Shown: positions 16,295 to 63,100 of the stretch, piece by piece
Layout of the letters: each line of letters starts with the position of its first letter
Position numbering within the stretch: position 1 is the first letter of the stretch
Assembly: GCA_030265395.1 (NCBI GenBank)
Contig: JARFYF010000036.1
Location: forward strand, 1,701,884-1,765,883
Reading direction: 5' to 3'
DNA from: Rhina ancylostomus
Taxonomy: Eukaryota
DNA: 64,000 nucleotides
Translations under genes and position numbers: made by a program
The notes under the pieces: generated by a model
Databases searched by the model: none
What the model was told of the DNA's origin: nothing
Seen by the model: the letters and a program-made list of their open reading frames with translations, nothing else

Positions 16295-16479
16295 CTATCT
16301 GGAGAACTTGCGAACAGCTTTGTATGACGTCGGTATAGACAGGAATATCGAGCCATCTTTGTCATCTGTTGTCAGGTTCTCTACTGAGCCCCAATTCTTT
16401 TTACTGCTTCCATAACTCTTTGGCAGGAAGAGTTCGGCAAGCTTCCGGTTCCGTCGCTCTCCCCGAGACTGCTGGAATT
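16295..16479 (-). CDS. SOWAH-family ankyrin-repeat gene, terminal coding exon
   Basis: TCTTTCTTGTGTTTTAG acceptor; phase 1 matches preceding exon; (K)FQQSRGERRNRKLAELFLPKSYGSSKKNWGSVENLTTDDKDGSIFLSIPTSYKAVRKFSR then TAG at 16295-16297. Confidence 0.85.
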
Positions 16480-19641: not shown

Positions 19642-19737
19642 TTGAAGAGACATTAGACTGATCTGTAGGGTCATCATTGTCTTTTAGATAGTGGGATGCA
19701 AACCGTCCACTATAGTCCCTTACATTTGTTTTTGCAC
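19642..19737 (-). CDS. SOWAH-family ankyrin-repeat gene, coding exon (end of ankyrin region)
   Basis: CAG|96 nt|GTAAGC, phase 1-1; GAKTNVRDYSGRFASHYLKDNDDPTDQSNVSS contains the SOWAH RDYSG...YL motif. Confidence 0.92.
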
Positions 19738-20499
19738 CTGTTTAAAAATCAAAAATATTTGTTATTATACCATCAAATATTTGTTATTATATTTCCGGGA
19801 AAATTCTACAAGTGGATAGGCATAGCATTAGGATATTTCAAGCAATTAATAAAACTTCAACACTGCTCAACAGATTTGAACTGATAAAAGTCTGTACAAT
19901 ACAGAACAGTAGGGCAGTCAGTGTCTGTAGGAAGAGAAATAATTAACATTGCAGGTCTGAGATCCTTCATCTGATGTTCTGATATTCACAAACATTAAAT
20001 AATGTGAAAACACTTAAACAATAAAATACTTTAAACTAAGTTACCCAAACCTGCCCCTCCCCTGTGTAGCCATTCTACCTCAACAAAATGAATGGGCTCT
20101 GGAAACCTGGTGCAATTTCAGCAGCAGGTCTACCAGGGGAACTGCAGCAAGTGGTCTTTCCACTGAGGGATCATGAGGGATCCAATGTTGGAGCGCAGTC
20201 TGGGAATCATCAGTAGTCACGCAAGGAAATTTGGAACTTGAGTGTTCCCGTTTTGCTTGCGGGTTCCTGAGCCCCGACTATTTATGGAGATAGATTCCCA
20301 CAGCTCAGGATGAAACTGGCAGAAATTAGGAAAATGTAGGCTGATAAAAATCAGTTATTCTGTCAATAATTTCTTTGCCAAATTGCTTTATATAGAAAGG
20401 GACCATTCAACACATCAGATCCATGCTGGTCCCAGGGAACAATCCCATTCCATTTCTCCTTATTCCCTTGTACTCCAGCTCATCAATGCCCCCCCCCCC

Positions 20500-20710
20500 A
20501 CTGATTTTTGCCATTAATCTACACAAAGGGTAGTTTACTGTAGTCAATTAGCATGGATGTCTTGGGATGTGGAGGAAACTAATGCACCTAAAGGAATCTC
20601 GTGTGATCAGGAGGTAGAATATACAAACTCCTCATATAAAGCAAAGGTCAGGATTGAACCAGGTTCTTGGAGCTGTAAGGCAGCAACACTACCTGCTGCA
20701 CCAGCGTTGC
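20500..20710 (-). mobile_element. Degraded V-SINE copy
   Basis: GGATGTGGAGGAAACTAATGCACC...CAAACTCC...GGATTGAACCAGGTTCTTGGAGCTGTAAGGCAGC, the reverse complement of the SINE head and core. Confidence 0.65.
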
Positions 20711-21619
20711 ACAGCAAAGTCCATGGTCAGAAATAGAAACCCAGCACAGTAATAGAAGGAACTCAGAACCCCAGTAGGTAGCTTCAGTAATGCAAATAAC
20801 CATTCCTCCCATCCTGCCACCCACACCGATTCACCTCTTGACTAATGGCTGTATGAACTAACTAGTTGTCTTACGTTACGGGTATTTCAATAGACCAAAG
20901 TGCCCCCAGTTCAGAGAGAGGCAAAACAGGCCAGAAAGACAATAGGTAATTACATCCCTTAAGCCTTGACAGAAGTTAATGTCAGAAATGGGGCTTAATT
21001 TTCATTTTGAACATCGAAATCAATCCTTAGTACTTTGCTTCCACTTGTGGATAATGCCTACAAGGGAATCAAAGGGCTGGATCTTCCAGTTAAAAACTAG
21101 CAGCTGTGCTTGACACTACTGACTTTTATCTACTTAACCAGGTGGAAGCACAAGACCTGAACCCAGCCTTCTGTTCAGGTGAGCACCAACTCCTTGACAC
21201 CCACCATCTGCCATTAAATTCCTCATGAAGTCCTACAGGTGAGACTGGCACAAGTTCAGCAGGTCTACTGGCTTCAATGGGAGGAAACTGCTCTGGGCAG
21301 AATAGCAAGTTCATTTTCTTTCACTTGATTATAGTAATTTGAAGAGTAGTTAACTGTTTTTACTTTTGTGTTTGTTGTAGCTTGTTAAACGTTGTTAATA
21401 GTATATTTTCTAATTCAGTGCTTGCAAGTATCAAAATCATTCGTAAATATTCAATCTAAATGATAGCTTTGCCAGCCAGCAAGTCTGGGGACCTCAAAAG
21501 GCCATCAAAGCAACCCAGGATTCAAATTAACCCTTTTTAAAATGTACATTTTGGAATATCTACCAATGAATACCACAAAAGATTACTTTGATAGACATGC
21601 AATGCAGCAGGAATCTCAC

Positions 21620-21692
21620 CATAATTATGAACTAGAAGATCCATGATGTCCAAGTGGGAATGCAGAGCTGCTATGTGCAAAGGTGTGTAACC
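21620..21692 (-). CDS. SOWAH-family gene, ankyrin repeat exon (GYTPLH)
   Basis: TGTTTCCTCAG|73 nt|GTGAGA, phase 0-1; GYTPLHIAALHSHLDIMDLLVHNY. Confidence 0.95.
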
Positions 21693-22736
21693 CTGAGGAA
21701 ACAGTTAATCATTCTTAACTTTAAATGTACCTCATTGACCATAATAACAAGATGATGCTTCGTAGGATGAAATGGAAAACCTTAATTCAGCTGTTGTGTA
21801 AGCGACTTCCCTACCTCCCCCATTAAATGCAATTTGTCAAACTAAGGAAAAATCATACAACTAAAAGGCAATGTATTTCATCAACATTTAATACTATATT
21901 CAGAAAGTAGCTAGGAGAAATTAGTTCCTCAAAAGTTATTACTTCTTTCCACATTATAAGTAGCCTCATTCTTAAAATTAAAACATATCACAACTTCTAT
22001 AATCGCTCTGTCTCAGACACATTAAAACCCATTAAGGGCTGTTAATTTTCTTAATAACTTCAGTGCCGATGCTGCCTAATAAAAGTTGCAATACGTTTGT
22101 TTCTAATCTCAGATTTTCAGCATCTGGATAATTTTACTTTTGCACTTCTGTATCTGTAAGAGACTCATTACTTTTGGCTGGTTAAATAGACTACCTGTAT
22201 GTATTTTCATAACACCCACAAAACAAATAAGAATATTAGTGTATGATTGCACTTATGGTTACAAAATAATTTTAACAGATGAGACTGATTACTGATTGAA
22301 GAATAAACGTAATTCAACCAATTGAGAAGCAGGCTTGAACTGTGTTACGAAAGTGTCAGGTGAACTACCAAAGACAATTACTTTTATAAGTTGTGCTTGG
22401 AAATCCTCTCATTTGCTTACATTACCACTATACAGCGAAGTAGCGTGTTAACTTATAAACAAACAATATGTTGAATACTTTGCCCCTGCCCTTCCACAAC
22501 CACAACTTTCTCAAATATTTTACTGCATAAAAGGTTAAACATTGAATAGAGCTATTTTTTTCCAAAATGCTGGACAGTCTTATCCTTATAAATGCAAGGT
22601 ACTGGAGACTGATAGTGCACATAACATCTTCAGTAACAAATCAGTGATCATAAAAAGCAAAGTAAAGCTGCAAACTAAAGCGGATAATTTGTTAGGCAAA
22701 GGAAAAGCAGTAATTAAAAAGACATGCAATACTCAC

Positions 22737-22739
22737 ACC
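22737..22739 (-). CDS. Single-codon microexon (GGT, Gly) of the SOWAH-family gene
   Basis: - strand TGTCATCTGTTTCTACTCCAG|GGT|GTGAGT; good pyrimidine tract and consensus donor; supplies the G of the HG-GYTPLH motif. Confidence 0.8.
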
Positions 22740-24573
22740 CTGGAGTAGAAACAGATGACAAGACAATCACCAAAAGCAGGGAAGAAAAAAAATTAAGTGT
22801 TTATTCAAAGATTGAATTTATAACAATACTTTTCCCCCTCCCACATTTCTTTTCCCCATCAGAATAATTCCTACTAAGGTGACGATCCTCACCTTCACTC
22901 AAATTCCTCAATCTTTCTTAATGACTAAATAATATTGACAGGAGATGGATGGAGAAGTAGTACACATGCTTTAATCTAAACAACTGGTCGGAGTGATTTT
23001 AACAGGAGGACACCAATTTAAAATCAATGATGAAAAATGTGTCCATATTGTCAATCTTTGCCACTTATAAAAAGGGCCGGATCTCTCTGTGGCTAAATAT
23101 GATGGGTCTAAACAAAACCATCAGCATTCAGCTGTTCAAACTGCAGCAAGTCATGGATCTGCATGCATTGCTGCCAAATGCGCAAGTCCCAAACTTACTG
23201 ACTGATTTGATGTCACAATAGACTATATAGCTCTGCCACTGGGAGTCCAGCGGAGGAGTTCACACTAGGTGGGGTTCCTCAGCATTACGTTCCTCAGTGA
23301 ACGTTCCATCTTGACCCCTGCATCAGGGTGACCCTGTTGCAGAATCCCAACCCCAATTTTTAAAAAAAATTTCATTTTAGTTTTTTTTATTGTTTCTAGA
23401 TGATTTGAACTTGTTAATTTTTAAAACATTTTTTGTTACAAGTCATCAAAAGCATCACAATTATCTTGCAGCTATTAAAGTCAACATATCTGGGTGCAAA
23501 GCTATATTGGTTGTGAAAGGTTTCATGGAGTTTTTGGGGCAAGTCAGACTCACTTTATTGCAGGAAGCCCTGCGCCCAAGCAGGCCCTGCACTGGAATGG
23601 TGGACGTTGAGGACCAAAATTACCCTTCTTCATCTGACCAGATTATGGTGAGGGAGCCCGTGGTTAAAGAAAAGTCTATTAATTCTTCAAGAAATGAATG
23701 AGAATATTACCAGAAGAGAAATATTAAAAGTGACTTGCCATAACCGGGAAGTTGCAAACTGTAGTGCTGGTATTGTAACACTGTATGATTTTACAAGATG
23801 TTTCTTCTTATATTTTAATTGTCTTTTTAAAATGTGGAATTGTGAGATATCACTTTTGACTTAAAGTGAAACAAACAGTGCTCAAGTACAATACAGCTTT
23901 ACATTAATTTTCATTTAAGAATAACGAAATGATGATTCAAGGTTGGGTTTGACCACTGATTTAATAAAAAGATCAAAACTATATTTCCATAATTGTTAAA
24001 TTCCTAGTTTGGTGAGTAAGTAATATCCTGTGTGTAAACGATATTCAGTACAACAACCACTGCCAGGACTAAAACTATGGTAGGAACTAAGCATTACAGA
24101 ATCTGTGGTTGAGTGCTACAGTGACCTTGTTTGCGAGGAACCACAAACATAACAAGGTTAATCACTTCATTCCATGAAGAAGTCATGCTAATGCAAACAG
24201 CAGGTAAGCAAGGCTCCTCATTCAACACTGCCAAAAAGGTGTTTGTCACGGCTTGCAAGGATGGAAGAATGAGGTTCATATGAATATGGATGGACCACAT
24301 CAGCAAAGCCATGGCTAACAAGGAGCTGATGCTTTTAAGGTGGGGAACGACAAAAAAACTGGCAGAGGAAACTGGCAAGAAAAATAAGAAAATATGCCTT
24401 TCAAACACACAAGTCAAGTTAAACTGATTTAAATGTGGAATTAACTGAACTATGCAAAGTTGCACTCAAATGTCTAGTGGTCATTTATTTGCCTTTTAAC
24501 TGAATCCTCTTAAATTTGGTTTCACTTAACAGGACATAATTGCTCAAAACAACATTAAACAACTTCAACTTAC

Positions 24574-24576
24574 ATG
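24574..24576 (-). CDS. Single-codon microexon (CAT, His) of the SOWAH-family gene
   Basis: - strand CTGCTTTCTGCCGTCTGATGGATAAACAAAG|CAT|GTAAGT; supplies the H of the HG-GYTPLH motif. Confidence 0.75.
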
Positions 24577-27500
24577 CTTTGTTTATCCATCAGACGGCAG
24601 AAAGCAGTGAAAGAGGAAACAAAAAATTATTCACTTCAAGTTCACTAAAAATTATATAGCATATTGAAGTAACAAAAGAGGTTTGAATATCCCATGTCAA
24701 AGATTAGATCTCTATGTTACACTTGTTCAATATGCAACATGCTGTTCAATCTGGGTTAGCTGTTAACACCCCCAGGAACGTGGCATTGGTTCAACTAATT
24801 AACCAACCTCCTTCAGTACACCACTTGTAACTGAGAATACTACGCCACTTGAATTTTCTATTATGAAACATGCAAGATAGCTATAAAACAAAAGCCAGGC
24901 TTTTAACTAGGCAGTAAATAATATGAGGAAATCAGGATACTTGCCACCAGAATAAACTGATAGCTAATAACACTCTAATATTCAAGCCTTTAGTCTATCA
25001 TTCCATTTGGAAACCTTTTTCCATATTATATCTTAAATAAAGTGAGCATATAGCTGGCCTTTCATTTCCAATTCCTTTAATCTCACAAAATATCCAATAC
25101 ATTATATAGTCTTTATTATGTTTCAATCACATTNNNNNNNNNNNNNNNNNNNNNNNNNNNNNNNNNNNNNNNNNNNNNNNNNNNNNNNNNNNNNNNNNNN
25201 NNNNNNNNNNNNNNNNNNNNNNNNNNNNNNNNNNNNNNNNNNNNNNNNNNNNNNNNNNNNNNNNNNNNNNNNNNNNNNNNNNNNNNNNNNNNNNNNNNNN
25301 NNNNNNNNNNNNNNNNNNNNNNNNNNNNNNNNNNNNNNNNNNNNNNNNNNNNNNNNNNNNNNNNNNNNNNNNNNNNNNNNNNNNNNNNNNNNNNNNNNNN
25401 NNNNNNNNNNNNNNNNNNNNNNNNNNNNNNNNNNNNNNNNNNNNNNNNNNNNNNNNNNNNNNNNNNNNNNNNNNNNNNNNNNNNNNNNNNNNNNNNNNNN
25501 NNNNNNNNNNNNNNNNNNNNNNNNNGTGATAGGCAGGTGCGGGGGAGGAGGGGAGAGCAGATCCACCGAGGGATGGGTCAAAGGTAAGGAGAGGAAAAAA
25601 AGGCTAGGAAAGGGAAGAGAAGCATGATGGGGGAGGGGGGTGGGGATTACCTAAAGTGGAGCTCTGCACCGTGGAACAATGCCATAAACCATTGTTTCTT
25701 AAAAAAAAGAACATGAACCCGTACATTCACTTTTAGATCATCTATCTTCTATTCCTTGGAACATTTTAACCAGCAATACATCAGTTGCTAAGTTTTTGTA
25801 CAAGCACACTGGAACAATGAGACACAACAAATAGAACTTTCAACATTCAGTGCCACAACCCATGCATCATTATCATGTACAACATGGTGGTTTGGTACAA
25901 TGTCTGTGGAAGTGTGTGCTAATTTTAATGCTAACTAAATTAAGGAGTTTTTCTATCATTTTGTTACTGGTGATTATTCTATAGTGGTGTATGTTACTAT
26001 ATGTTTTAAAATGAAATTTCATAATTTATCACATAGGCTTATCCTGGCTTTAATTCCAATTCTTTTCTTTTACTCAACCACTTTCCACACCTGCCTAATT
26101 ACCCAAGTATGAATTCTTTGCCTTGTCCATTCTCGTCCTCCAGCTGCCTGTCACATGCACTGTTCTCCAATACCCAAAGGACCTGTATGACAAGCTACCT
26201 ACCCAATAATGACCTCTATAATTAGCTTTGTACATTAGTTAACCTTCTTCCACTTCCATTGCTGCCTTTATGCTCCTGTGTCAAGTCTATACCCGACTGT
26301 CTGCAAATTGGTTCATGCTTGTGTATTCCACAAGTGACACAACTTTTCCCAGTTAATGTGTTTGTGCTTCAGAACATGTGGTATTCATTTTAATCATTTA
26401 CATAAGTGTGTAATTATATATAATGTAAATAATGTCATGTAAGGCATATATTGTAATGCTGTTTTACTGAAACAGGTTAAGTGGGATTGTAGTTTAAAAT
26501 ATATTTCAAATTACAATAAGGACACCAGTGTAAGTAAAGATGTGATTTTATATAATACATAATAAACTGGTTTACAGCCTTATGAAACCAGGCTCAGTGA
26601 CTCCGATCCATCATATTAGCACCAAAGTTCACAAGCTTTAAAGTTGGGTATTTTCTCATATTAAGTGTACGAGTTATTTATGGGAGTTCAATATACTTTT
26701 TGTACTTTGTTGAAGTTCAATAACCATAATCCTCTCCACTTCAAGTTCAAAGCCTAGCTTGACTTTGGGCATATTGAAGTATTTATCATGTGTCTTTCAA
26801 CTTGCATTTATATTCACTTGATACACAGGGACTGAGTACCCAAGTGCTGTTGTGGAGACTTTACCATTGCTTAAATTGGGATTGTGTGAGCGAGTGATGA
26901 GATTACCAAACAGGCACTTATAACGAGAGTTCAATTTTCTTTGATTCAGATTTCCTCTCTCCAGTTTTGTTTTTGATGGCTCCTATATGAATAGAAGCCA
27001 GAAATTTGTGGCCACAGCATAATTCGAGCAGAGCCTAGAGTGTTACTGAGACGTTTCACTTCTTGGCTTTATTTTCCATCTTGTGAAGGAGGAATTGTAT
27101 TAGAAAAGATGTGCCGACTCCAAAAAAGTGGAGAGTGTACTGCAAATAACAGCATGATTTTATTCAAGTATAATCATAATATTTCCACTTTTGCCATTTC
27201 AGACTCAATAATTCTCCCTTTCACTGTAATCTTTTTTTAATAAGACTGTGTTCAAAAACATTAGCTACCCTCCAGTCGTTCATCCAATTGGCCGTCATCA
27301 ACCTGGGCACTGTGAGAAGGGTAAAAACTTACCCAAAAGAGAATTACAAGCCTGATCACACCAGTTCACATCCAAGACATGCACACTCTCAGTGAAGATT
27401 AGGAGCATAAACTCTGTTCAATTGTCCTTATCCTCAAGCCAAAAACAACAGATAATTGATGAATCAGCTGGAGCTAGCTGATCACGTACTGAAGATGAAA

Positions 27501-28144
27501 CCAAGGGCATTTCTAGATTGTTTGTCCAAGGAAGTGGTAGTTATTCATAATACATTTACATAACTGATTTATTTTCTTATTGTTTTAAATGAAATTTTCT
27601 TTCACAAATACCTTTTCTTCGCATTTAACAGTTGCTTTTAATCAAGGCAAAGGATGCTTATACTCAATAATGGCACCTCTTTGCTTGCTTGGGTATGGAA
27701 ATGAATTGATAGTGAACTAGGATCTCCAATTTTGGATTTAATTTTCTTCCGTGCATTGATAAGCACAATATGATGAGAACAATACAAAGAATGGGCAAAA
27801 GGATTTAGCAATTTATTCGTGTTGCATATGTTATATACATAATGAAAATATGTAGTATCCAAGATGTGGTTTCAGTGAAGTCAAGCATTTGGCATGCATG
27901 ACCAAGCTAAACTTCTAACCCATGACCTTCTATTCTTGTTCTCAGAAATGACCTCTGTTACACCCAAATTCATGCCAGCAGGAAACTGACATCAGTAATT
28001 ATCCCACCACCCAAATAAAAGGTTATCCCGAAAGGCCTACCTCAATGGATGGAATTATGGAACATGAAGTACCATTGAAAATGAACAAAAAAAAGCCTCG
28101 TCATCTATTTTTATATTCTCTGTTGCATCATTCACACAGCATAC

Positions 28145-28420
28145 CGAGACTGTGTGGAATCTGCACATTCTTCCTGTGTATGCGTGGGTTTCCCCCAGGT
28201 GCTTTGGTTTCATCCCACATACCAAAGACCTGCGGGTTGGTAAGTTAATTGACCACTGTAAATTGCCTTTAGTATGTAGGTGAGTAGTAGAATCTGGGAG
28301 GAGGGGCTGGATGAAAATGAGGGGAAAACAAAATAGGATTCTTCTGTAAATGGAAGGTTGATTGATTTTCAGTGTGGACTTGGTGGGCAGAAGGGCCTGT
28401 TTCTGTGCTCTGTAACTTTA
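28145..28420 (+). mobile_element. V-SINE copy, 5' truncated
   Basis: GCACATTCTTCCTGTGTATGCGTGGGTTTCCCCCAGGTGCTTTGGTTTCATCCCACA core and GGGCAGAAGGGCCTGTTTCTGTGCT tail. Confidence 0.75.
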
Positions 28421-29897
28421 TGGCCAAGTCTTGACAAACATCAAACACTAGATCCTAATGAGTGCATCATGCAGGAACTTCCCAAGATGTACTATGGATA
28501 CAAATGGTCAAGGTGAAAAGCCAAGACAATGGGAAAAGGGAGCATACTACTCAGAATTTCAACTTCTTAAAAAGTGACTCAAGGAAGTTCCAGTAGCCGA
28601 CATGGAAATACATTTTTCAAATTTGCTATCACTGTCATTTTGGCATATGGCCTCAATAAAATTGTGCTAATGTAGCCTTCAGCCACAGTGAACTTCAGTT
28701 CCATCCTTTTGGAAATGACAAAAGATCGGAATAAAAACATTTCTAATTGAGGCAAACTCTTTCCAACTCCACTGATGTTAATCCAAGTCAACCGACAACA
28801 CAACAGCTGGTCTGAATACTCCCAAGTAAGAGAAGATTGCTTTTGACAAGGAGAGTCTTCTCTACTAGTTGCCAGCAGCCAAGCATCCCCATCGATGTTT
28901 TCCCTTGCAGATCATTGCCTGAATTCAAATAAGGATCCTCAAGGATAGGATTCATTTGGAACCACGTTAAGCAAATTAAGCTTCCAAAAGGAATCTCCAT
29001 TGATTATCAGTCTTATAAAACCATGCATTTAAAAAAAAACTGAAGTACTGCAGCAATCACTCAAACTCCAGCCAAAATATCTGAAGCTGCAGCTTTTAAA
29101 CAGGCATGATGCTAAATATACCGACGATAAGGATAATAATATCATCGGCACCTTGGACATTAACTCCAGAAATTATCATTCTGACTGCTAATGTGCAACA
29201 CAAAATTTTGTTGACTGAATCTCTTGGATGCCTGACAAAGAAACAAAACATTAGACAGGCAAATAATGTTTAACAATGATATTGTCACTTAGCCACAACA
29301 TAGCTTTGGATAAAATAAATGATGTTTTAAACAGGGAGAAGTTAGATACCAGATCATGGGGCTTTATACAACACAAGAGCAGGCTTATCTGTAACACTTG
29401 CATGCTCCTCAGGTTCCTTCCCTGGGGCATTTTCCAATAGTTTGTAAAGGATGCAGAACTAAGAAAGAAAGCAAAATTGGATGACAGTGGAGGGTAGCTA
29501 GTGAGCAGGCAACTATACGAATTAGTCATAGCATGAATTACTATATAAAGGAAATGATCAGAAAGCAGAGAAAATCAGAAGAAAATTTAAATTAAAATTC
29601 ACACTTAGCACTGCACAATGTATTCACACTAAATTTCAAAGACACGTGGCTCTGAGTCTTGGGTTCTGTACAAAAATAAAGTCAGCTTTCACCACATTAT
29701 ATAGTAAATTTGGGTGAACTTACTCAAAGGACATGCCTGCTCTTCACTATAAATAGCAATGCAGCAAAGAATCACAAGTTGTAGGCTGCTGTTCCATGGT
29801 TTCATTTGCAGGTTGTTAACAATGGAAATACGTTTTTAAGATATACAGACCCCCTTCAGCAGAATAGTAAAATTAAAAAGGAAAATATGTAACTCAC

Positions 29898-29984
29898 AGC
29901 TCTGAGATTAATATCCACTCCTGCATTTATCAACATTCGTGCCATGTTTTCTTTGCCGTGTTTGGCTGCCCAGTGTAAAGCAGT
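29898..29984 (-). CDS. SOWAH-family gene, ankyrin repeat exon (TALHWAAKHG)
   Basis: TTTTTCTTCTTCCAG|87 nt|GTGAGT, phase 0-0; TALHWAAKHGKENMARMLINAGVDINLRA. Confidence 0.96.
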
Positions 29985-30446
29985 CTGGAAGAAGAAAAAT
30001 TAACAACTTGAAAATTTAAACAAATATTTTACTTGCAAAGCAAGGACTGATATTAAAATGTTAGTTAATGCCATCACAGCCCCTTTTGCTTCACTTACAA
30101 CAGATGAAGTATTATTACATACGGAAAAATGGAAAACAGGTGTTGGGTCATCTGTCAATATCTACTTATCCAGATGCCATACATTTGTTCAAAAATAGCA
30201 CTGAAAAAAATCTTGGGACAAGCTGTTATATTCAAGACATTACTCAATGTAAGTTTTCATTATTAGAATGTATCACCATTTGTTGTGACATTCAAATAGA
30301 ACAGGGAACGGTGTCAAATGTTGTAATCCCCCCCCAAACACTCAGATTGTATATTGTTGTGAGTTTAAAAAAAACATCAATTTGCATTTACGTAAAAACA
30401 TTTTCAATGCATGACTTAAAGTGCTCCCTTTCTATTTTAATATCCG

Positions 30447-30785
30447 TGAAGAAAATGCTGGAAAAACTCAGGACAGGCAACGTCTGCGGAAAGAAATACA
30501 ATTAACATCGAGTCCAGGACCCTGAGAAAGAGAGAAACAAATTAATCTGGGTAGCAGATAAGGTGGGGGGGGGGAGGGCAATGGGTGGGACAAAGGGAAG
30601 TTCTCAGATCAGCTGCAATAAACGGACCAATTTTGGAGAAGTTCCCTTTGAAGAGCAGAGAAGCACAGCTCTGATGAAGAGTCCTGGATCTTAAACATTA
30701 ATTGTTTCTCTTTTTGCAGATACCGCACAACCTGCTGCTGAATTGTTCCAGCATTCTCTCTTTATTTCAGATTTCCAGCAACTGC
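30447..30785. mobile_element. Penelope-like remnant with inverted ends
   Basis: AAATGCTGGAAAAACTCAGG..GGCAACGTCTGCGGAAAGA at the left and its approximate reverse complement GCAGATACCGCACAACCTGCTG..TTCCAGCATT at the right. Confidence 0.5.
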
Positions 30786-33700
30786 TTATTGATCTTCACT
30801 CCCTTTCTTCATCCCGGAAGAAGTCAGAACCTTTTTAAACTAGTTGCCAGCATTATTTGTCAAATCCCACTCTAAAACCCAATGTCCTAATCTGCTTTGA
30901 CAAACTGGTGCAGTACTGTGGGAGCACCATACTGCTAGAGGTACCATCTTTCATATGGAAATTAAATTGCTCTCTCAAGTAAACAGATACAATCACAAAG
31001 CACTATCCAAATGAGCAGAGAGACTCTCCCTGTGTCCTGGCCAATATTCATCCATCAGCTACCACCACCAAAGTAGACTGGGAAAAATCTGGTCTACAAA
31101 GTTCTGGCAATGTCATGAAGACCTGCCAACATTCATCTCCACAAAGAAAGTTTGGGATACTGGCTCAAGCAAATTCATATNNNNNNNNNNNNNNNNNNNN
31201 NNNNNNNNNNNNNNNNNNNNNNNNNNNNNNNNNNNNNNNNNNNNNNNNNNNNNNNNNNNNNNNNNNNNNNNNNNNNNNNNTAGAGAAGCCCTGAACTTGC
31301 TGAGGCATTCCAGGCAGGAAACTTGTCAGTCCACTCCACTGCTGGGCTTTGCATGGAATTCAAGTGCGGGCCACAAACTCATGGAAATTCCCCAGCCACT
31401 CACACAAGGCATCTGCACAAGGATCACAAGCCAGGATCCAAGAGACCATTTCAAAATGGACTTTATAGCTGCAAGGAAGAAAGTCTATTTAAAAAATCTT
31501 GCCTCTCCCCATTATTTGAGTTTGCAGAAACATTTTATTTAACAATGCTTTGTATTATTTTAGTCTTTTTAACAATACATTTTACTTTTAATTATGCATC
31601 TTTTAAGGTTTTGAATGCCCTGAATGGCAGTGACAGTTAGAAACATTCCAAAAACATGACAAATCTGATGAGAGAGCCAAGTTAGAGCTGAAGGTTTGCT
31701 GTCAAAGATTTCCCCAGCACCTTCCCCAGGTAGGGCTTGTTCTGGCTTGTACGTTACATCATGAAAGGCATTGCTGTTGGGTCACAGACATTTTTGGTTA
31801 GCAAATTCCTCTTCATTAATCCAAACTAGTTCAGTGCAGGGCCTCTGGGGCAATCCAAATGGATAACAGAAATAAGGCAGGCTGGGCCATTATCTGATCC
31901 CCATCACGAGGACCTTGCTCAACCTCACTGTGCACTAATTGGCTGTTAGCTATAACAGTGGTTGTAAATCACTATGGAACACACTGGTCATCAAAAATAC
32001 AAATTTAAGTACATGCTCTTGTTCTAAATTAAATGTTCAACATTGCTTCTGTGATCCAGATGGTTCAGTTTTTAACCATGAGGCACACTCAAATATCCAA
32101 TTTCTCCTTATAACCACAGCCCTTCATTCCAGGCAACATCCTGGTGAATTTCTTCTGCACTCTTTCTAATGCTATTCCATCATTCCTGTAGTGTGGTGAT
32201 CAACACAATACTCCAAGTGCAGCCTGACCAATGCTTTTTTTCACAGCTGCAACATGACATCCCAACTCCTTTACTCAATGAGTTGTCTTGTCGTATTGCT
32301 CAATTATACTCAACGTACCAGGTTCGATCGCTAGTCTGCTGTGTGTCATGCCTCCCAACACCTCAACCACAATGGGGGAAGGCTGCCAGAGTCCTGACTC
32401 CTGAGCATTAGTCAAGGGGAGGAGGGCACATTGAGCAAGAACAAAATTGAGTTCACAGATAATGACCTTTCCAATGTGAACAATCTTTCAGCATTTTTCA
32501 TTGTGCTTCAAATATGAGAAATCCCAACGTATAAGTGAAGCATTGGAGAAAGCCCAGTGCTCATGAAACTGTCCCTTTAGTAGTAAACCAAAATCAGGGA
32601 AGGGATGCAACTGGGAAAAACAACCAGCTTCTGTTCACCCAACATTTTCTTCATCTCAGTAGATAATACATTTTGTTGAGACATTGCATTAGCAATGTTT
32701 AAAATCAAAATATTCATATCCTATTTGATTGCATTATGACAGAGACATTTGAGGGGAATTGAATTTTGCTGCTAAAATATAAAGGCTAGTTTGCTATTAA
32801 AATACAAGTTTAAATTGTTCTAATATTTTTATATTTAAATTTTCTCTGGGTCTTCAAATGGGGAAAATCTAAATAACTGCAGGTATACTTTAAGGATATA
32901 CTAAATGTAAAAAAAAACAATTTTGAATTAACGTGTTTTTCTAACCTGGATCACAAATCTGTCTTTGATGATCCTAAGAAAATTGTCGGGCTGTTACTAC
33001 CTGATGATCATCTTCCCTCCTTGGAGGCCCCATGTTTGTAGTTCACCGTCTGTTTCGTACTGGAAAATTCCCTGAATTTGCCAGCTGCTCACGAGTGTAT
33101 GTACGACATTTCCTGCCCATTCGGCTAAGCTAATTACAAAACAACAAACCAAACGTGCCTCAAATGAAGCCAAGGTGTAAGTGCTTGACAGGACTGATGA
33201 TTGATGATGTTTGCTGCGACCCATCGGCTGTGGTGAACAGGGGCCTAGTTATGCTCTCACCAACTTCCCGCTCAGTGGGAATGTCACAACTGAAGCCTAA
33301 TATTTATGTTAAAAATAATTTTAGTGAAAGAAAGAAAACCAGAGTAATTGCAATGGGCTCATTAGACACCTGGGAGAAGAAACTTCCTCTAGAAGTAGAT
33401 TTATTTTAATGAGACAGTATTATTACCATCTCATTATAACCAAACAGCTTTTTTGATCGTCTCTTGGTAATCTAAACATTCAATTTAGACAATGCATGCC
33501 TAATTTTAAAGTGTAATTTATAGCAGCATGCACAGAACTTTGACGTGTGTGGCAAAGACATTACCAACTGAGATTTCACTGACTAATGTATATAGATTTA
33601 CTTTCTACAGACTGTTTTTCTATATGCACGCTTTAGATGTGTACATAAACAAAGTAATCAGATCTAAAAGCTGTCTTCTCTTTAAAGGGAATTCTTTAAG

Positions 33701-33974
33701 GTTTTCTTAAGAGACAGAGGATGTACATAGTTCAGAATCAGAATTATTAATTATCACTGACATATGACATGAAATTTGTTGCTTTGTTGTATTTCTGGAG
33801 GTTACAACCAACCATCTATCAGTCCATCTACCAGAGTTAACAGCAGGGGAGGGTGGAGAGATGAAGATTAAAGATGAAATTGATCTGCTTATTTGTGGGC
33901 CATCTACTAGCTAAATGTACATGAGCCTTATCAGAAATATACATCGAAAGAGTAATTCTGCAATTGCGCATATA

Positions 33975-34202
33975 AATTGGTAAGTTGGTTTATTATTGTC
34001 ACAGGCACCAAAGTACAGTGAAAAACTTGTTTTGCATGCCAGCCACACAGATCATTTCTTACACGGTGCATTGAGGTAGTACAAGGGAAAACAATAACAG
34101 AATGCAGAATAAAGCATGACAGTTGCAGAGAAAGTGCAGTGCAGGCAGACAATAAGGTGCAAGGGTCATAATGAGGTAGATTGTGAGGTCAAGAGTCCAT
34201 CT
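33975..34202 (-). mobile_element. Rex1/Babar-type 3'UTR fragment, runs into a gap
   Basis: Reverse complement of the 3'UTR at about 4910-5115 (TTTATTATTGTCAC...GCAGAGAAAGTGCAGTGCAGG...GTGCAAGGGTCAT). Confidence 0.7.
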
Positions 34203-36341
34203 NNNNNNNNNNNNNNNNNNNNNNNNNNNNNNNNNNNNNNNNNNNNNNNNNNNNNNNNNNNNNNNNNNNNNNNNNNNNNNNNNNNNNNNNNNNNNNNNNN
34301 NNNNNNNNNNNNNNNNNNNNNNNNNNNNNNNNNNNNNNNNNNNNNNNNNNNNNNNNNNNNNNNNNNNNNNNNNNNNNNNNNNNNNNNNNNNNNNNNNNNN
34401 NNNNNNNNNNNNNNNNNNNNNNNNNNNNNNNNNNNNNNNNNNNNNNNNNNNNNNNNNNNNNNNNNNNNNNNNNNNNNNNNNNNNNNNNNNNNNNNNNNNN
34501 NNNNNNNNNNNNNNNNNNNNNNNNNNNNNNNNNNNNNNNNNNNNNNNNNNNNNNNNNNNNNNNNNNNNNNNNNNNNNNNNNNNNNNNNNNNNNNNNNNNN
34601 NNNNNNNNNNNNNNNNNNNNNNNNNNNNNNNNNNNNNNNNNNNNNNNNNNNNGACCAGCTACAAGAAGAATGGGGTTAGTAGCAATATCTCCCTATTCTA
34701 TGCAGGGTCACAGAATTATCCCTTTGAGTTAATTGTATTGCTCAAGCGACACAAGTGAATTTTCAAACTGGACTAATCTAAAAATATTTTAACTTCTTCC
34801 ATAGGAAGGCATATTCATAGACAAGTTCTGAAACATTTAGATCCAGGTAGTTTTCTTTTTGAAAAAAGTCTTTGTCAAGCTTCTGGCAAAATTCTTGCAG
34901 TTACCATTGTGAGGAAATGGTACCAATAAATGGGAGGAAGAAAGGGGTAAACTTGGGTCGCCCTGGACACCCAAATGAATGGTGCTTCTACAATGGCCAT
35001 CTGACTTGGAAGGACATCCGGCACTGTACCTTGAAGGTCTACTGAGCAAAGTGCTTGAGGGCCTGTTTCTACCTATGGTCCTGGTTCAGGCAACAGATGC
35101 AAAGTGGACCACGAGGAAAATCATGGCTTTATGGAACTTCAGATCCTTAGTTTTCCTTTGGAGTGAAATTGTGATTGAAATTGAATTACAGGGCACAAAG
35201 CCATGGTTCAATTTCTAGCTCCAATATTTACGGACTTTAAATTCATTCATGCAAAATCCAAAATCCCACCTGCTTTTCTAATTACTTGCTACAGCTCCAC
35301 TTTGGCAAGCAGAATATGCGTAACATTTTCAAAAAGTCTTTTCTCTGCATTTACAACTATCAAGAACGTCACAGCTCTGGACTGGCCAAGAGATTGCATA
35401 CTCTGCCTTAAATAACTATAGGCAGATGTACATCTCCCCAATTCCCAGATTTTTTAAAATTTTGAGTGAGCTGTCAAATCACCATAGCAGTAAATTCTGA
35501 ACACATTTGAAACCATCCACCATTAGCATCCAAATTTTCCTACTCTCTCCTCCTCCAGTAGGCAATTCAAGAGATTATTCTGACTTCTTAATCAAGATTT
35601 GGGCTCAACATGAAGGTGTAACAGGTCCTTCAGAAACCTCCCTACCATAAATCCTTTAGTCTTGTGGTTTTACGTACATTATTTTTGAATTACAGAATTA
35701 CTGTTGGTCTCACTCCTCAAACACAGTTAATGATTTGCTTAAGAAATTAAATTGCTTTTACAATTTACAACAAGAAGCAAATGAAGCTCAGTACCAACAA
35801 ATGTGAAGCGGCAGACAGTGAATAAGAGTTTGAGATATTAGGTATACAAATAAAGAAATGAAAAATAAAATTAAAGAGGCTTAAAAATTTTTTCATTGGC
35901 CAGATAAAGTGATGATACAAATAGTGAAGCAAGGAACAAGGTCTAACAGAATTGTGGAATAGTTAGTCAGGACACTTAACACATATAGATTATTCCGAAA
36001 GCTCTGATGATATTCACACCACATTAGGGAGGTCTATGTATTAGAAAGATACAAATCACTGTGAAGAACTCATTATTTCACTCCGAAGGATGAAGACAGG
36101 ATGGATCTTTAAATTATGAGCTTAACTGACAGAATTGTACTACAAAGATCAGTTTTGGAGGATGCAAAAAAAATGCTCAAACTAAATACAGTATTATTAT
36201 TTTTTCCCCCTCTGATTATCTCCCTTCGTTACATCAAGACAGAGGTGGCTCACAGGGCTAGAAGTCAATAAAATCCAGTATTTACAAATTTAGCAAAAAT
36301 AAACCTTCTACAGTTATACTTAAGATACAAAAGAAACTTAC

Positions 36342-36344
36342 GAA
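36342..36344 (-). CDS. Single-codon microexon (TTC, Phe) of the SOWAH-family gene
   Basis: - strand GATTGTTCCTCGCCGTAG|TTC|GTAAGT; supplies the F of DFTS-GF-TALHW. Confidence 0.8.
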
Positions 36345-37399
36345 CTACGGCGAGGAACAATCATTTCCGAAGTTGAAGAGATGATCCACAATTCAGAGAT
36401 GAGAAGCAAATTGTGATAAGGTAAAGAGAAAAATGTCATTGAGAAAAACCTGAACACAAATATTTCAATAAAGCTATTCTACATTCCAAAGAGTAGAAAG
36501 TGGCTTTGTACTGCATGAAACGTGCCAAATTAGCAACCTGTAATTGCATGCAGACCCTAGCTCATAAAGCAATCAAAGACAACGTTACTTGTGTGCAGCT
36601 TCACTTCTGGTAAAGGATAAATTTACAGTTTTGTGTTCTTGGAGATGTCCTGAAGTGTACATTGAGAATCCAGGCATTGTCTGATTTCCCCATTTTGTAC
36701 CTACCACAGGCAATGATCTGTGCTCTCAATACTGACAAGCAAACATAATTAATTTGCTCTACTCTGGGTTCTTTATTAACTTTAAATAAACAAATACAAG
36801 GATAAATTTTTTCATACAAAATAGACTTTATTCTATATAAACAAAGAAATCTATTAGTTCTCAACATGCATCGCTAACACATATCGAATTGTCGCACTGA
36901 ATTATAATTTTCCTTGGTAAAACTTGTTGAATGATAGTCATTAACAATGATGACATTGTTGAAAGAGTATTTTTGCTGTTAATTACCAGACAACTTTTGG
37001 TGGCAAGTTTAATTGCCAATTCATGTCATGCATTAATAAATCACAAGCAAGATGACATTTTCGCAAAGATATTGCAGAGTAGTACAAATTAATCAGCAAC
37101 TTGTAGCCATTTCTAATTCAAGTGGGATCTCTTTATAGCAGTGTTACAGGGCTATTTGCACATTAATATTGCTGTGCATTGTTCATAAGGTGGTATGAAC
37201 AATGCACCTTTAGCACAATTTGGGTCTTCAGCATGAGTACGAACTGATATATCTGGACCGAATGCCAGGTTTGAGAGCATCATTCGGTCCACAGTGCTTT
37301 TCAACTAGATCAGCTCACAAAACTAGTAACATAAAATAATTATCAAATGGTTTGCGAGATTTCTTTTCTAAAGAAAATAAATGCAACACAATCTCAGCT

Positions 37400-38560
37400 G
37401 GGACAGTTGAGGGAAAACAAAGACATCAAAGTTTAAACAAAAAATGAAAAGCATTAAAAGTGGCAAAACTTAGTGGTAGACAAGAGGACTGGGAACTTTT
37501 CAGGAATCAGCAGTGGTGGTCTTAAAAGCTAATGGGAAGTGGGAAAATTGATTACACTGGCAAGTAATTATCGAAACAGTGAGAGTTACTATCCTTGTAT
37601 TAAAGGGAAGATGGCAGCTAAGTGTGGAACTCCTTAAGAGTGAGACTGGGGAATTAATAAAGGGAACAGCAGATAATTTAAATCAATACCTTGCATTAGT
37701 CTTCACAGTAGGAGGACAATGCAAGCGTCCCAAGGATAACTAATGGGCTAGTTTCAAATAGGAGGGATTGTTACAAGTTCTTCCCTATCATCAAGGCTCA
37801 AGGCATTGGAAAAGCTAATGGACTAAGGACAGACAAATCAACAACACCCAATGGCCTGCATTCAAGGATTTTAAAGGAAGTGGCTGCAGAGATAGCAGAG
37901 CTATTGGTTGGATTTTTTCCAAAAACCCTGTTTTCCAGGGAGGTACAAGTGGATTGGAAAGCAGTGCACATGATTGCCTAGTTTAAGAGATAAAAAACAG
38001 GAAACTACAGGCCAGGTAGTTGATGACTACGTCAGGAAGATGCTGGAGCTTCTAATGAAAGAAGAAATAACTAGTTATAAAGAAAAGCTTCATGCAAGCA
38101 AACCAAGTCACCATGGCTTTATCAAAGGAAATTCATGTTTGAGAAATTTGTTGAGAAGTTCTTCCAGGATATAAACAAGCAGAGTCAACAGAAGAAAGTG
38201 AGACGATATGACTGAAACACAAGACCCTAAGCAGGAATGTTGTTGAGTTGTTTCCACTAGGGGGAGTGTTTTGAATTAGGGGAGGGGAGGAGTCATTGTT
38301 AAAAACCCGTGGTGCACAGGAATTCCTTCTCAGATGGTGGAATCTCTCTGGAGTTCTCTACCCCAGAGGGCAGCAGAGGCTAGATCATATCATTTGAGGT
38401 ATTTAAAGAGGAGGTAGATAAACTTTTGAAAGATTGGGGAATTGAGGGCTATGTGGATCTGGCACAGAAGGAGCTGAGGCTAGGGGAAGATCTGGCATGA
38501 TCCTATTGAATGGTGGGGCAGGTTGGAATTGCCCAGCCCTGCTCCTATTTTCTTGTGTAT
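37400..38560 (+). mobile_element. Degraded CR1 LINE (ORF2 pieces plus 3' end)
   Basis: CR1 remnants such as YLALVFT, LHSRILKEVAAEI, DWK, HHGFIKGNSCLRNL, with frameshifts and stops. Confidence 0.8.
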
Positions 38561-40288
38561 AAACAGGCAAGCCTGAAGGTCATGGTGTTCCCATGCACTG
38601 CTGACCACATCCTCCTTGTTGGGCTTGGTCAGAGGGTTGGGGAGGTGCTGCAGCTGCCTGCCACTATAGCCACCCTGTGCCAATGGAAGGGGTGATGAGT
38701 GTTAGATGTTCTTATTAGCACTTATTTAAAAAAAGTCACAGGAAGGTTGATGTTAATAGATAAGAATTTGGCAAAGCAATCATGCCTTGACTTTGCTGAT
38801 TGCTCACTTTCAAGAAAACTGCCCATGAAGATCTGTCTTTAGTCTGGATGTTCCCCTTGGATCTGTTGGCCTCTAAAGATCCCCAGTGCCTGGTGAATTC
38901 AAGTTCACAGAAAGTATTTCCACACTCCCACCCAAACAATCTAACCATATCCTCACACAGCAAACCAGCACATTGAAAGCTTTAGCTTATCTTTAGCGTA
39001 AAAAGACACAAAAAATTTTAGAGAACAAAATAGATTTTGGGACCTCACAATATTAAGGGAGAAGCAGAGATTTTACCTTTAAAAATATGGCATTCTGGAT
39101 TAATTACCTGAAGGAACTGGACTTCTTATAAAAAGGTTTGACAGGCAATGGGGTCACTAACTATTATAGTTTAGTCTGCAGTAAAAATAAGGTCGACCAC
39201 ATTCAACGAGGCATATCATTTACTTCTTAATAAAAAGTTAGAATAGTTTGCAATTTGTTGGAACGCTCGACAAATCTCAACCAGCGTCTGAATTTTGGGA
39301 TTAAACTGTGCATATTTTTTCAGAAGCAGCGGCTGTCAGATATTCTTCATAATAACTGTTTCTGTATTAGATTAAATTACAATTATTTTGTATTTGATAA
39401 GCCCTGTGGCTTTGAAATGTACATTTCCCTCAGGATAAAAAAAAGAAATTTACAAAAAGAATTGTGAATTAGTTATCTTTCTTTATGACAACACTAATAC
39501 TTCTGGCAATCACCACCAGTATAATAACCCAACCATGCGATAGATTCTGGTGAAGCTGAATGTGGTCCTCACCTGACTGAGGACTGAACCTTCCATTATG
39601 GATGGCTCTTTTCCTTTACCTACCTGAAGACGTTCAATTCCACATCTCAAACCTAAATGTCCAGATCCAGAACAATTATTAAATGCTTTTTCATTTGAAA
39701 AAAATAGGGCGGTCCTGTTATCTAGCTATCATCTTGTGCCATGCATCACCAACTGTCCTCCAAGCCTTGCTGGTATGTTTGCCTCATGAGGCAGATCACT
39801 TTGCACATGACAAGACCTTTGGCAGTGGATCCGGAGTCCTGACCCCAGATTGGTGATCTAGCATTTTGAACAATTTCTAAATTCATCAAGTATTAGTGCC
39901 TGTAATTGGATAAAAGTATAGTTACTACAAAGCACGGCTCTTTACAAAGTTCTATTGGTTGAAAAAGGCCACTCAGTGCCGCTCTAAAGGATGTTATAAA
40001 ATGTATCAACTTCCAATTAAAATTCTGAAATTAGTTATATAGATAACATTTCATTCTCTGACCTGCAGATCTGAGTTTAGCAGCACTTGGGAAATTTTAA
40101 GATAGATAGAATTTCCATCAATTTTCCTTAGCACAGACCAATTGGAGTGTTCTGTCCCAAATGGCCCAGTGGAGATTAACTGACATACCATACACCATGG
40201 ACTGACCGTAAGTCTTCCTTGATCAGTAACAAACATGATATAGTTTTACACAAGACCAAAATTGTTCCAATTGTGGTTAAGTACTTAC

Positions 40289-40291
40289 CCC
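40289..40291 (-). CDS. Single-codon microexon (GGG, Gly) of the SOWAH-family gene
   Basis: - strand CACTAAC-TTTGAAATGATCTGTGTGATGATAG|GGG|GTAAGT; consensus branch point 27 nt upstream; supplies the G of DFTS-GF-TALHW. Confidence 0.78.
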
Positions 40292-40316
40292 CTATCATCA
40301 CACAGATCATTTCAAA

Positions 40317-40323
40317 GTTAGTG
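40317..40323 (-). promoter_or_regulatory. Consensus splicing branch point CACTAAC for the Gly microexon
   Basis: Near-perfect U2 branch sequence with branch A at -27 from the 3' splice site. Confidence 0.6.
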
Positions 40324-41272
40324 GGATCAAACAGGCACACCGATTACAAAGGAGTTATAGGGCAGGAGAAAAAGGAAATATATTTCAGTCAAGAATTTAA
40401 AACTTCCAAAACATCAGCAAATTGAACTGAGATGAATCTGCAGATAGGATATCCTGCAAAATTATATTCAGGCATTTTTGTTTTGTATATCTTTAACATT
40501 TAAAATAATTATAAATATTAAAACAGCAATACAGGCTACAATAAAGGAGTTAACAGAATCAGCATTTACATTGCTATTGGAAAAAGGAAGCAAGAATTTG
40601 CATGAAATTAACACAATCTTTGGCAGCACCAGTGTCAAAGATTAGGATAAATCAATGGGACAATACATTTCTAAAAATCTTCAGTAATTTACAAAATGTC
40701 CAGATGACAGAGGCATATTAGTTAAGTGAATTAATTCCCACATTACAATGCAGTAAAACTTCACTAAAGTCTTACAAGATCTTGGGATCTTTCAAAATAT
40801 TTTTACAATCAATTAAGTATTTTAGAAGTGTAGTTACTATTTTAATATAGGAAACAAAGTAAAAGAATCTCCAGAAGAGCAATGATATAATGGCTAATTG
40901 TTTTCTTAAAATACTGTTGGGTTTGAGGAATAAACATTAACCAAAACATCAAGGACAAATTTAGTTTCTTTTTGTAATAGGGCCATGTCTTCCACTGGCC
41001 ACTAAGGACCTCAGGTTGTGGTCTCAGAACATTAGTATTCCACTGAGCTGTCAGACACAATTTTGCTCATCACTGGAGTGGAGCACGATTCCACAACTTT
41101 CTGACTCAGGTGAGTGCACTGTGGTTGTTGAATCATCTCACTTCATTTTGAAAATGCTGTATGATATTGAGTAGCTCAATATGGATTGTACCTAATATGT
41201 CTTGAGCACATTTTAAATATCATAAATTTAAAATATATTCAAAGAAAAGCTAGTAGAAATATAGGTACTTAC

Positions 41273-41284
41273 AGATGTGAAGTC
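41273..41284 (-). CDS. 12-nt microexon (DFTS) of the SOWAH-family gene
   Basis: - strand AATTCTGAAG|GACTTCACATCT|GTAAGT, phase 0-0; matches the SOWAH K-DF(I/M/T)S motif. Confidence 0.9.
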
Positions 41285-42230
41285 CTTCAGAATTTCAATG
41301 GAACAGTTTACATGGAAGAGACAAAATTATTTTAAGTTTTCTTGGTACTTTTACAGAAATCACAAATGAAGCAAAGATCTTTAATGACCTGCAATTATCT
41401 TAAATACATTGCATAATATATCCAATAATGTTGAATTTGCACGCGAATCCTGATGAGACAAGTTTCCTATTCAAATTCAGTGTTTTATTTAATCTCCACA
41501 AAAGCCTCTGGAACTGGACCCCACCAGAAGCTGATCGCCAAGGTGAAAATCAAATATTTTTGGAAGCTATGACTTAGTTGCTGTCTGACCTGCCACTTCT
41601 AGTAAAATTGTCACACAGTATACAGCAAGGCAACATTTCAACTCTCTGCATGATGAGCAGCTCTCACTGGATATTCCAATCATACTTCCTGACTACTGGA
41701 TGGAAAATGGCATTCATGCTACTTGTTACATTAAATATTCAGTAAAAGTGATATACACAGGGTACAGAAGAACCTCCTACTGTTGTTAACATTGGCATAT
41801 CTGGGTCATCTAGATTTTGTTCTTGATTATTCAGAATTGCTTATAACACAGATGAACAAGGCTCCAAGTTTGGAGTAATAGCAGAAGGGTGGCACACTTC
41901 AGAAAGAAAATGCATGATTTCTGCTTGTACGAGTCAGAGAGCCCAAACGTGCAACCCATAGTTTGAATTGCTTTGGTCAACAATGAGTAGAGAATGTGGC
42001 AGAATATTACTCTCCCAACCCAATTCCTAATGCAGCTATTTTAAGAAATTCTATACATAAAAGGATGCTTGGATGATAACAAAGTTGAAAAGATATTTTA
42101 ATTGAATGCACTAAGAAATCATTGCATATTATTTTCTTTTTCAAACAAAAACACTATATTTTAGTTGCATTTTTTTCCAAGTAATTTTTCATTACAACAT
42201 GTAAATGAATTCAACTGTGGCGAAGTTTAC

Positions 42231-42332
42231 CTTTTTCATTGCCAGAGATGGATCCTGCTTGAGAAGGTCGCACAAAGCAGTTAAATGTCCAATGGCAGCA
42301 CACTTCAGCCACTCCTTCTCTAAAGGATCCAA
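42231..42332 (-). CDS. SOWAH-family gene, exon preceding the ankyrin repeats
   Basis: TTACTTTTCTTAAAG|102 nt|GTAAAC, phase 0-0; LDPLEKEWLKCAAIGHLTALCDLLKQDPSLAMKK, the SOWAH L(D/E)PLExEW...LLxxDPxLA motif. Confidence 0.95.
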
Positions 42333-54654: not shown

Positions 54655-54717
54655 AGCAACAGAGGGCGATCCCATACTTCCACTGCCATCCTCAAATCCA
54701 TTTTGTTCCAAGTCATC
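54655..54717 (-). CDS. SOWAH-family gene, coding exon
   Basis: TGTTCTATTTCAG|63 nt|GTAAGT, phase 0-0; DDLEQNGFEDGSGSMGSPSVA joins to give SVA-LDPLE, as in SOWAH proteins. Confidence 0.85.
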
Positions 54718-62950: not shown

Positions 62951-63100
62951 CTTGAACACAGATTCAAATTCTTCCTGCTGAGCTTCTTCCACCTTTATTT
63001 CAATATTCACTGGATTTCCTGCATTGTTTTCAGAAGCAACATCAGACTTTTCATCCTGCTTTTCTTCAGATGCTTCACTGTAGCGAAGTCCAGGATTTCC
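62951..63100 (-). CDS. Probable upstream coding exon of the SOWAH-family gene (acidic, low-complexity region)
   Basis: TTAAATTCTAG|150 nt|GTACTC, open only in phase 0; GNPGLRYSEASEEKQDEKSDVASENNAGNPVNIEIKVEEAQQEEFESVFK; donor is weak and homology is not verified. Confidence 0.55.

Follow-up and report, generated by a model that had tools for sequence, protein, structure and literature searches.

We analysed a 64,000-nucleotide (nt) stretch of DNA from Rhina ancylostomus (contig JARFYF010000036.1, positions 1,701,884 to 1,765,883, assembly GCA_030265395.1; referred to in its entirety as the window), whose minus strand, judging by homology, is the site of the 3´ two thirds of a SOWAH-family gene. 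Four exons of this gene, each a single codon long, very probably are used in Rhina ancylostomus at the exact sites described below. The boundary regions of the ankyrin repeats would be encoded by five microexons, a 12-nt exon for DFTS followed by single Gly, Phe, His and Gly codons. With all five spliced into the main mRNA, the protein would read S-G-F-TALH at the first junction and A-H-G-GYTPLH at the second, and inclusion of the single codons would restore the 33-residue spacing of the repeat. Among proteins from other species, all four residues are present in 23 of 23 contiguous open reading frames (ORFs) found only in Logan contigs, as DFTSGF before TALH and (H)GG before YTPLH.

Single codons that probably complete two ankyrin junctions

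The part of the gene between its large exons A and C is laid out as follows, in the order of transcription.

42231..42332, minus strand: exon A, 102 nt, 34 amino acids (LDPLEKEW...LAMKK), phase 0 at both ends, donor gtaaac, located by tblastn
41273..41284, minus strand: 12-nt exon, DFTS, GACTTCACATCT between ctgaag and gtaagt, with DFTS invariant in 25 complete homologues
40289..40291, minus strand: putative single-codon exon GGG, Gly, ankyrin profile position 2 of repeat 1, between gatag and gtaagt
36342..36344, minus strand: putative single-codon exon TTC, Phe, profile position 3, between ccgtag and gtaagt
29898..29984, minus strand: exon B, 87 nt, 29 amino acids (TALHWAAKHG...INLRA), body of ankyrin repeat 1, matched by Pfam Ank and 100% identical to the relative P0036
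24574..24576, minus strand: putative single-codon exon CAT, His, profile position 33 of repeat 1, between acaaag and gtaagt
22737..22739, minus strand: putative single-codon exon GGT, Gly, profile position 1 of repeat 2, between ctccag and gtgagt
21620..21692, minus strand: exon C, 73 nt (GYTPLHIAALHSHLDIMDLLVHNY plus 1 nt), start of ankyrin repeat 2, matched by Pfam Ank

A preliminary description of this DNA had placed the four single codons at these coordinates, and reading the sequence we found all of them there, on the minus strand, in the right introns and in the right order. Each of the five small exons is flanked directly by an AG acceptor and a GT donor, and all five are phase 0, as had been claimed; the same phase holds at every junction from exon A to exon C. 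Microexons are defined as internal exons of at most 30 nt that enter the mRNA, and all five fall well below this length. The introns that separate the microexons from one another and from their neighbours are about 1-6 kb long, and the cluster spans about 20.5 kb. The intron arithmetic given earlier is also correct, with 20,538 nt between 21693 and 42230, of which 111 are coding.

The spacing of the ankyrin repeat demands two more residues at each junction than the large exons supply, as the preliminary description had argued and the Pfam Ank profile confirms. Searched separately, exon B matches the profile with E=2.5e-08, its residues 1-28 falling on positions 4-31 of 33, and exon C with E=7.5e-07, its residues 1-22 falling on positions 2-23. 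Since exon B starts at profile position 4, positions 2 and 3 are missing before it; and since B ends at position 31 and C starts at position 2, what is wanted between them is position 33 plus the first position of the following repeat. The family motifs given in the earlier description were likewise borne out. In an alignment of 25 homologues that are complete at both junctions, D280, F281, T282, S283, G284, F285 and G316 (numbered as in P0036) never vary, and at least 90% of the sequences keep H315. The model of P0036 that AlphaFold built with this alignment has a predicted local distance difference test score (pLDDT) of 71-92 over the ankyrin region and of only 61 overall, the latter because the linker is disordered. 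In this model G284 and F285 open the helix 284-294, and H315 and G316 lie in the loop 306-319, before the helix 320-326.

Assembly gaps interrupt the region at 25134-25525, 31181-31280 and 34203-34652. All three are intronic, and the exons that flank them lie on the same strand and in the same order. Residues 246-341 of P0036 are covered entirely outside the gaps, by exon A (246-279), DFTS (280-283), G284, F285, exon B (286-314), H315, G316 and exon C (from 317). Since none of these residues is left for a gap to supply, the gaps need not be assumed to contain coding sequence, and the reading frame is independent of them.

Splice sites of the microexons

Strict single-codon sites, AG-NNN-GTRAGT, occur five times in the 64-kb window, never on the plus strand and five times on the minus strand, all within 22737-40291. 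We compared this with 3000 shuffles of the two intron spans that preserved dinucleotide composition. The shuffled spans held 0.51 such sites on average, and five were reached in 0 of 3000. A site with the right residue appeared in 0.6-1.4% of shuffles per site, which agrees with the rough earlier estimate of 0.01-0.02 chance hits per site, and a correctly ordered pair appeared in 0 of 3000. Donors of the form GTRAGT follow all five microexons (5/5), versus two of the six ordinary exons of the gene in the window.

When the donor was relaxed to a plain GT, one to three rival sites were found per codon, with poor donors or in the wrong order; the donors of these rivals were gtgaag, gtactc, gtggcc, gtcaaa, gttgca, gtgtac and gtctgt. 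Ahead of the TTC site, GGG is the sole GGN codon flanked by AG and GT, and the three rival TTY sites all have poor donors. The intron spans contain no 6-nt exon of the form GGNTTY or CAYGGN between AG and GT. The pyrimidine tract of the GGT acceptor is strong and those of TTC and CAT are fair, and a branch-point-like motif, cactaac, lies about 27 nt upstream of GGG. An origin of the sites from repeats was rejected, each flank being single-copy within the window.

Neural microexons that depend on SRRM3/4 are defined by neural or retinal inclusion together with a UGC-type enhancer near the acceptor. UGC is present upstream of CAT and of GGT, as a simple occurrence.

The fifth strict site in the window, AG-TCA-GTAAGT at 23199-23201 on the minus strand, lies between CAT and GGT, was absent from the preliminary description and would add an in-frame Ser. 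We rejected it as a fifth single-codon exon, given that homologues go from H directly to G and that purines predominate in its acceptor region. A chance match, compatible with the roughly 0.5 sites expected, is the probable explanation, and at most the site is a rare cryptic exon.

Two sets of DNA-like contigs, X1 and X2, were compared with the window; X1 holds 0.91 and X2 0.29 of the words of 16254-25133, and the assembly itself may have been built from X1. Contigs of the X1 set match the surroundings of the TTC exon (36335-36559) and of the GGG and 12-nt exons (38440-41818) with 0 differences.

Transcript-like reading frames and database models

Relatives were collected by a phmmer search with exon A against 1.84 billion representatives (32 matches) and by word-index searches with the Cetorhinus model P0001 and the newt-cluster contig ORF P0052 (566 and 1010 matches, of which the best 120 each were used). 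With two cluster look-ups included, 248 proteins were gathered; 236 of them entered the junction tallies and the last 12 were read separately. The relatives come from sharks, rays, skates, chimaera, coelacanth, lungfish, caecilians, salamanders, turtles, sturgeon, paddlefish, gar and many teleosts.

The 23 Logan-only ORFs comprise 21 proteins of 340-433 amino acids, each read without interruption on a contig of 1.2-4.3 kb, and two tuna ORFs; they are members of skate-, newt- and teleost-type clusters. Many introns interrupt the gene, yet these ORFs run unbroken on short contigs, from which we infer that the contigs are spliced mRNA; even a retrocopy would go back to spliced mRNA.

The proteins from other sources (n=215) present a different picture. 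Both junctions could be read in 149 of them and were complete in 20, a share to be read with the second search query in mind, which was itself complete and favours complete matches; within the first 180 proteins the complete share is 6 of 107. At junction 1 (n=160) the most frequent form lacks only the G (46), followed by the full form (41), absence of F (14), absence of every small exon (14) and presence of the 12-nt exon only (6); the rest have G only (2), F only (2), two read-through residues (8) or some other sequence (27). Junction 2 (n=157) is full in 60, and has neither residue in 42, a VS read-through in 23, H only in 20, G only in 2 and another form in 10. The complete transcript-like ORFs (23/23), the small share of complete models (20/149) and the invariance of the residues together support the core of the preliminary description, namely that these are real exons that gene predictors and spliced aligners usually miss. 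Short-read aligners have been reported to lose exons of less than 8-10 nt, in the parts of the source available to us (PMC7821500).

The faults in these models are themselves informative about exon structure. A 6-nt GGNTTY or CAYGGN cannot be halved with GT-AG splice sites (there is no AG before TTY or GGN, and no GT after GGN or CAY), so the losses of single residues indicate, by an indirect argument, that each codon must be an exon of its own in these other species too. Most of their truncated models continue from DFTS with VS, the translated read-through of GTxAGy. The tortoise Chelonoidis (P0008, P0168, P0169) and the tarpon Megalops (P0029) have DFTSG followed by VS, and the caecilian Geotrypetes model P0061 has RAHG followed by VS. 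With VS as the translation of GTxAGy, a GT donor would stand directly after the single G codon in the tortoise, the tarpon and the caecilian.

Several annotations come apart at precisely these residues. The four Amblyraja isoforms X1-X4 (447, 446, 446 and 446 amino acids) differ only in microexon residues, and none of them has the last G. Isoform X3 of Cetorhinus, the closest named relative, is missing all five small exons. In Leucoraja (P0149/P0153-P0159), Heterodontus (P0038/P0150), Chiloscyllium (P0148, P0154), Lissotriton (P0162/P0163) and Megalops (P0029/P0244) the gene is split into two models at the microexon cluster, an N-terminal "uncharacterized" protein that ends in intron read-through and a short C-terminal one that is called "SOWAH-like". 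In Salmo salar (P0236-P0238), isoform X1 (396 amino acids) has the first Gly, and ACN11450.1 ("Ankyrin repeat domain-containing protein 57", 395 amino acids), which equals RefSeq isoform X2, reads DFVSF-TALH without it. The accession series of ACN11450.1 suggests a derivation from complementary DNA (cDNA), and the protein may represent a real transcript that skips one single-codon exon.

A second teleost paralogue, found in clupeiform and characiform fishes (Alosa, Denticeps, Metynnis; DFVTGF..., MDPLEREW...; P0009, P0013, P0016, P0023, P0025 and P0173-P0176), shows the same losses of one residue and of six residues between isoforms. The microexon layout would therefore predate the duplication. 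Overall, the architecture seems to be old, and from these comparisons would be common to sharks, rays, chimaera, coelacanth, lungfish, amphibians, turtles, ray-finned fishes and the second teleost paralogue.

Alternative explanations

Chance matches are a very improbable explanation for the four sites. The mRNA would then lack the four residues, or would have another source for them, such as exons inside the gaps. In favour of this, the use of the sites in Rhina ancylostomus is deduced from genomic DNA and relatives, the three intronic gaps do exist, and the TCA site at 23199-23201 demonstrates that a consensus-like site can arise where none is needed. Yet the shuffles make a site with the right residue infrequent and an ordered pair absent, relatives show no variation in these residues, and a relative (P0036) whose ORF contains them matches exon B at 100% identity; in addition, the gaps between TTC and exon B and between exon B and CAT would need to hold better sites in the same order. 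It is extremely improbable that the gene is a decaying pseudogene in which conserved-looking sites persist as relics. Nothing specific speaks for this, and the gene has 12 open, collinear exons at 70-100% identity to relatives, intact splice sites and the C-terminal motif of the family before its stop codon.

A more serious contender, though still an unlikely one, is that the four sites are real exons but regulated cassettes, such that tissues make isoforms that differ by single residues of the ankyrin loops (up to 32 isoforms), the full form being one of several. This would fit the common phase of the five small exons, the RefSeq isoforms one residue apart in Amblyraja, Denticeps and Salmo, the salmon sequence ACN11450.1 with its RefSeq counterpart, and the prevalence of the form without G among annotated models at junction 1. 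However, none of the 23 contig ORFs lacks any of the four codons, and the residues, which are invariant or nearly so, lie where a helix starts and in the loop between repeats of 33 residues, places at which losing one ought to damage the fold. Moreover, if aligners lose exons of this size as the accessible portion of one report describes (PMC7821500), the resulting artefacts would resemble isoforms one residue apart. We are doubtful of a more far-reaching proposal, in which the four single-codon exons are independently regulated cassettes kept for more than 400 million years, binding surfaces are graded by one-residue drops where ankyrin helix 1 begins and in the loop between the repeats, and splicing is obligatory, ordered and recursive-like, without exon definition.

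Use of the four single-codon exons in the main mRNA has to be weighed against the following points. Site use in Rhina ancylostomus is deduced from genomic DNA and relatives, and the mRNA nature of the Logan ORFs is taken from their uninterrupted reading on short contigs. The three intronic gaps could conceal alternative exons. Models without one codon could in part be real skipped isoforms, not errors, as with the salmon ACN11450.1 without its first G. The acceptor of GGG has a weak pyrimidine tract. Contig set X2, from another organism, is about 97% alike on 36335-42334 (159 substitutions), a figure that applies to the stretch as a whole and not to the microexon flanks. Finally, the order of splicing considered below is pure inference.

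Recognition of single-codon exons and comparison with known systems

One codon is the lower limit for an in-frame exon. A 3-nt exon would make up the whole of positions -3 to -1 of the 5´ splice site. As GGG, TTC, CAT and GGT are all unlike the CAG consensus, recognition by U1 would have to rest on the intronic positions +1 to +6, which are perfect. Furthermore, the 3´ splice-site complex and U1 cannot share 3 nt, so that the flanking introns are probably removed in a fixed order. Ordered removal would first fuse the codon to a larger neighbour. A set order of flanking-intron removal has been proposed for other mini-exons.

Recursive, or ratchet, splice sites have the form AG/GTAAGT. The single-codon sites resemble them in having a 3´ splice site beside a strong 5´ splice site deep within long introns, which would fit stepwise removal of the intron. 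Unlike a recursive site, which leaves nothing in the mRNA, the SOWAH codons are not of zero length, and would keep 3 translated nt, the residues being present in the ORFs of relatives.

Microexons of 3 nt are known in animals. Going by the portions of these reports at hand, examples are the diglycine and triglycine variants of cytohesin-1 (PMC6314551) and micro-Ex8 of Drosophila homothorax (PMC7392893). As in the SOWAH gene, these are internal one-codon exons with canonical splice sites, and that of cytohesin-1 also adds a residue to a functional motif. As far as the same portions tell, they are lone and alternative exons, whereas the SOWAH gene would have four, in two adjacent pairs beside a 12-nt exon, encoding invariant residues and apparently missing from none of the transcript-like ORFs. 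Three consecutive microexons of 3, 18 and 22 base pairs have been described for RPS24 in the sections of the two sources that we consulted (PMC12207440, PMC11162997). RPS24 is thus similar in having consecutive microexons that include one of 3 nt and are hard for standard tools. The RPS24 microexons are, according to those sections, alternative and set the C-terminal end of the protein, and those of the SOWAH gene are internal and in frame and would build the repeat boundaries.

In plants, clusters of microexons, microexons of 1 nt and pervasive misannotation are described in the passages available from one study, as is conservation of GTRAGT donors at the smallest exons, those of 1 nt included (PMC8831610). 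The same passages point to further likenesses, in deep conservation, in the position of microexons within conserved domains and in the occurrence of adjacent ones (5 and 12 nt in rice) (PMC8831610). The kingdom and the genes are different, and a run of single-codon exons is not described in these passages (PMC8831610).

We found no literature that links SOWAH, the old names ANKRD43/56/57/58 or ankyrin repeats to microexons, and of the 266 papers that name SOWAH genes none of the 25 listed deals with gene structure, though supplementary microexon catalogues may list these exons for zebrafish or other species. The cluster of four single-codon exons is public in some RefSeq models and, as far as searchable, undescribed. 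It would be unusual for one gene to have four single-codon exons, arranged as two adjacent pairs amid kilobase-long introns and encoding invariant residues of a folded repeat. With their apparent conservation from cartilaginous fishes to turtles, the gene would lend itself to studies of how splice sites are recognised without exon definition and in which order introns are removed. At these junctions 129 of the 149 database models in which both can be read are wrong or incomplete, which would provide a sharp benchmark for microexon-aware annotation.

The gene, its family and other features of the introns

Four further coding exons of the gene lie in the window, outside the region from exon A to exon C.

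62951..63100 (boundaries approximate), minus strand: upstream coding exon, linker region, located by tblastn with P0036, P0001 and P0033, between ttctag and gtactc
54655..54717, minus strand: coding exon (..DDLEQNGFEDGSGSMGSPSVA), located by tblastn, between tttcag and gtaagt
19642..19737, minus strand: exon D, 96 nt (..AKTNVRDYSGRFASHYLKDNDDPTDQSNVSS..), located by tblastn, between acag and gtaagc
16295..16479, minus strand: last coding exon (..FQQSRGERRNRKL...KAVRKFSR, then stop), located by tblastn, 93% identical to P0036

All 12 exons are open and collinear, with intact splice sites and 70-100% identity to relatives. The C-terminal motif of the family precedes the stop codon in the last coding exon, just after which there is an assembly gap (16154-16253). 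The earlier exons, including that part of the gene that encodes the N-terminal winged-helix domain, lie beyond the window.

SOWAH proteins combine a winged-helix domain at the N-terminus with two ankyrin repeats, and exons B and C match Pfam Ank in the same manner, as the two C-terminal repeats expected of the family. Relatives that are 84-91% identical over the shared exons carry PF25877 (SOWAHA-C winged helix) and Ank. Of the 13 batoid and shark proteins compared with the window by tblastn none belongs to Rhina ancylostomus; overall identity reaches 84% at most, with skate-cluster and sawfish models. The NCBI names of the orthologues follow no pattern (SOWAHA, B, C, D, -like, HOS4-like and uncharacterized), which suggests an unnamed SOWAH paralogue that persists in fishes, salamanders, caecilians and turtles. 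Mammals, birds and frogs are missing from the best 120 of the 1010 matches to the newt-type query P0052, which hints at a loss of the gene in these groups.

Isoforms of Carcharodon and Scyliorhinus (P0033, P0034, P0035) have an extra insert of 13 residues (..NGIHMMCKARKTQ..) in the N-terminal winged-helix domain. This insert is absent from isoform X3 of Cetorhinus and from the contig ORFs, and may be another small alternative exon.

The intron between the exons near 63 and 54 kb contains, at 60881-61369 on the minus strand, an open stretch of 163 amino acids with a reverse-transcriptase-like run (30 protein letters, not shown), which is probably a fragment of a long interspersed nuclear element (LINE). 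In the intron between GGG and TTC, the summed contig depth reaches about 500 at 37735-37934 and about 3,900 at 38335-38534, versus about 6 elsewhere, in both DNA-like runs and with many ragged joints. The very high depth and the ragged joints point to high-copy interspersed repeats in this intron.

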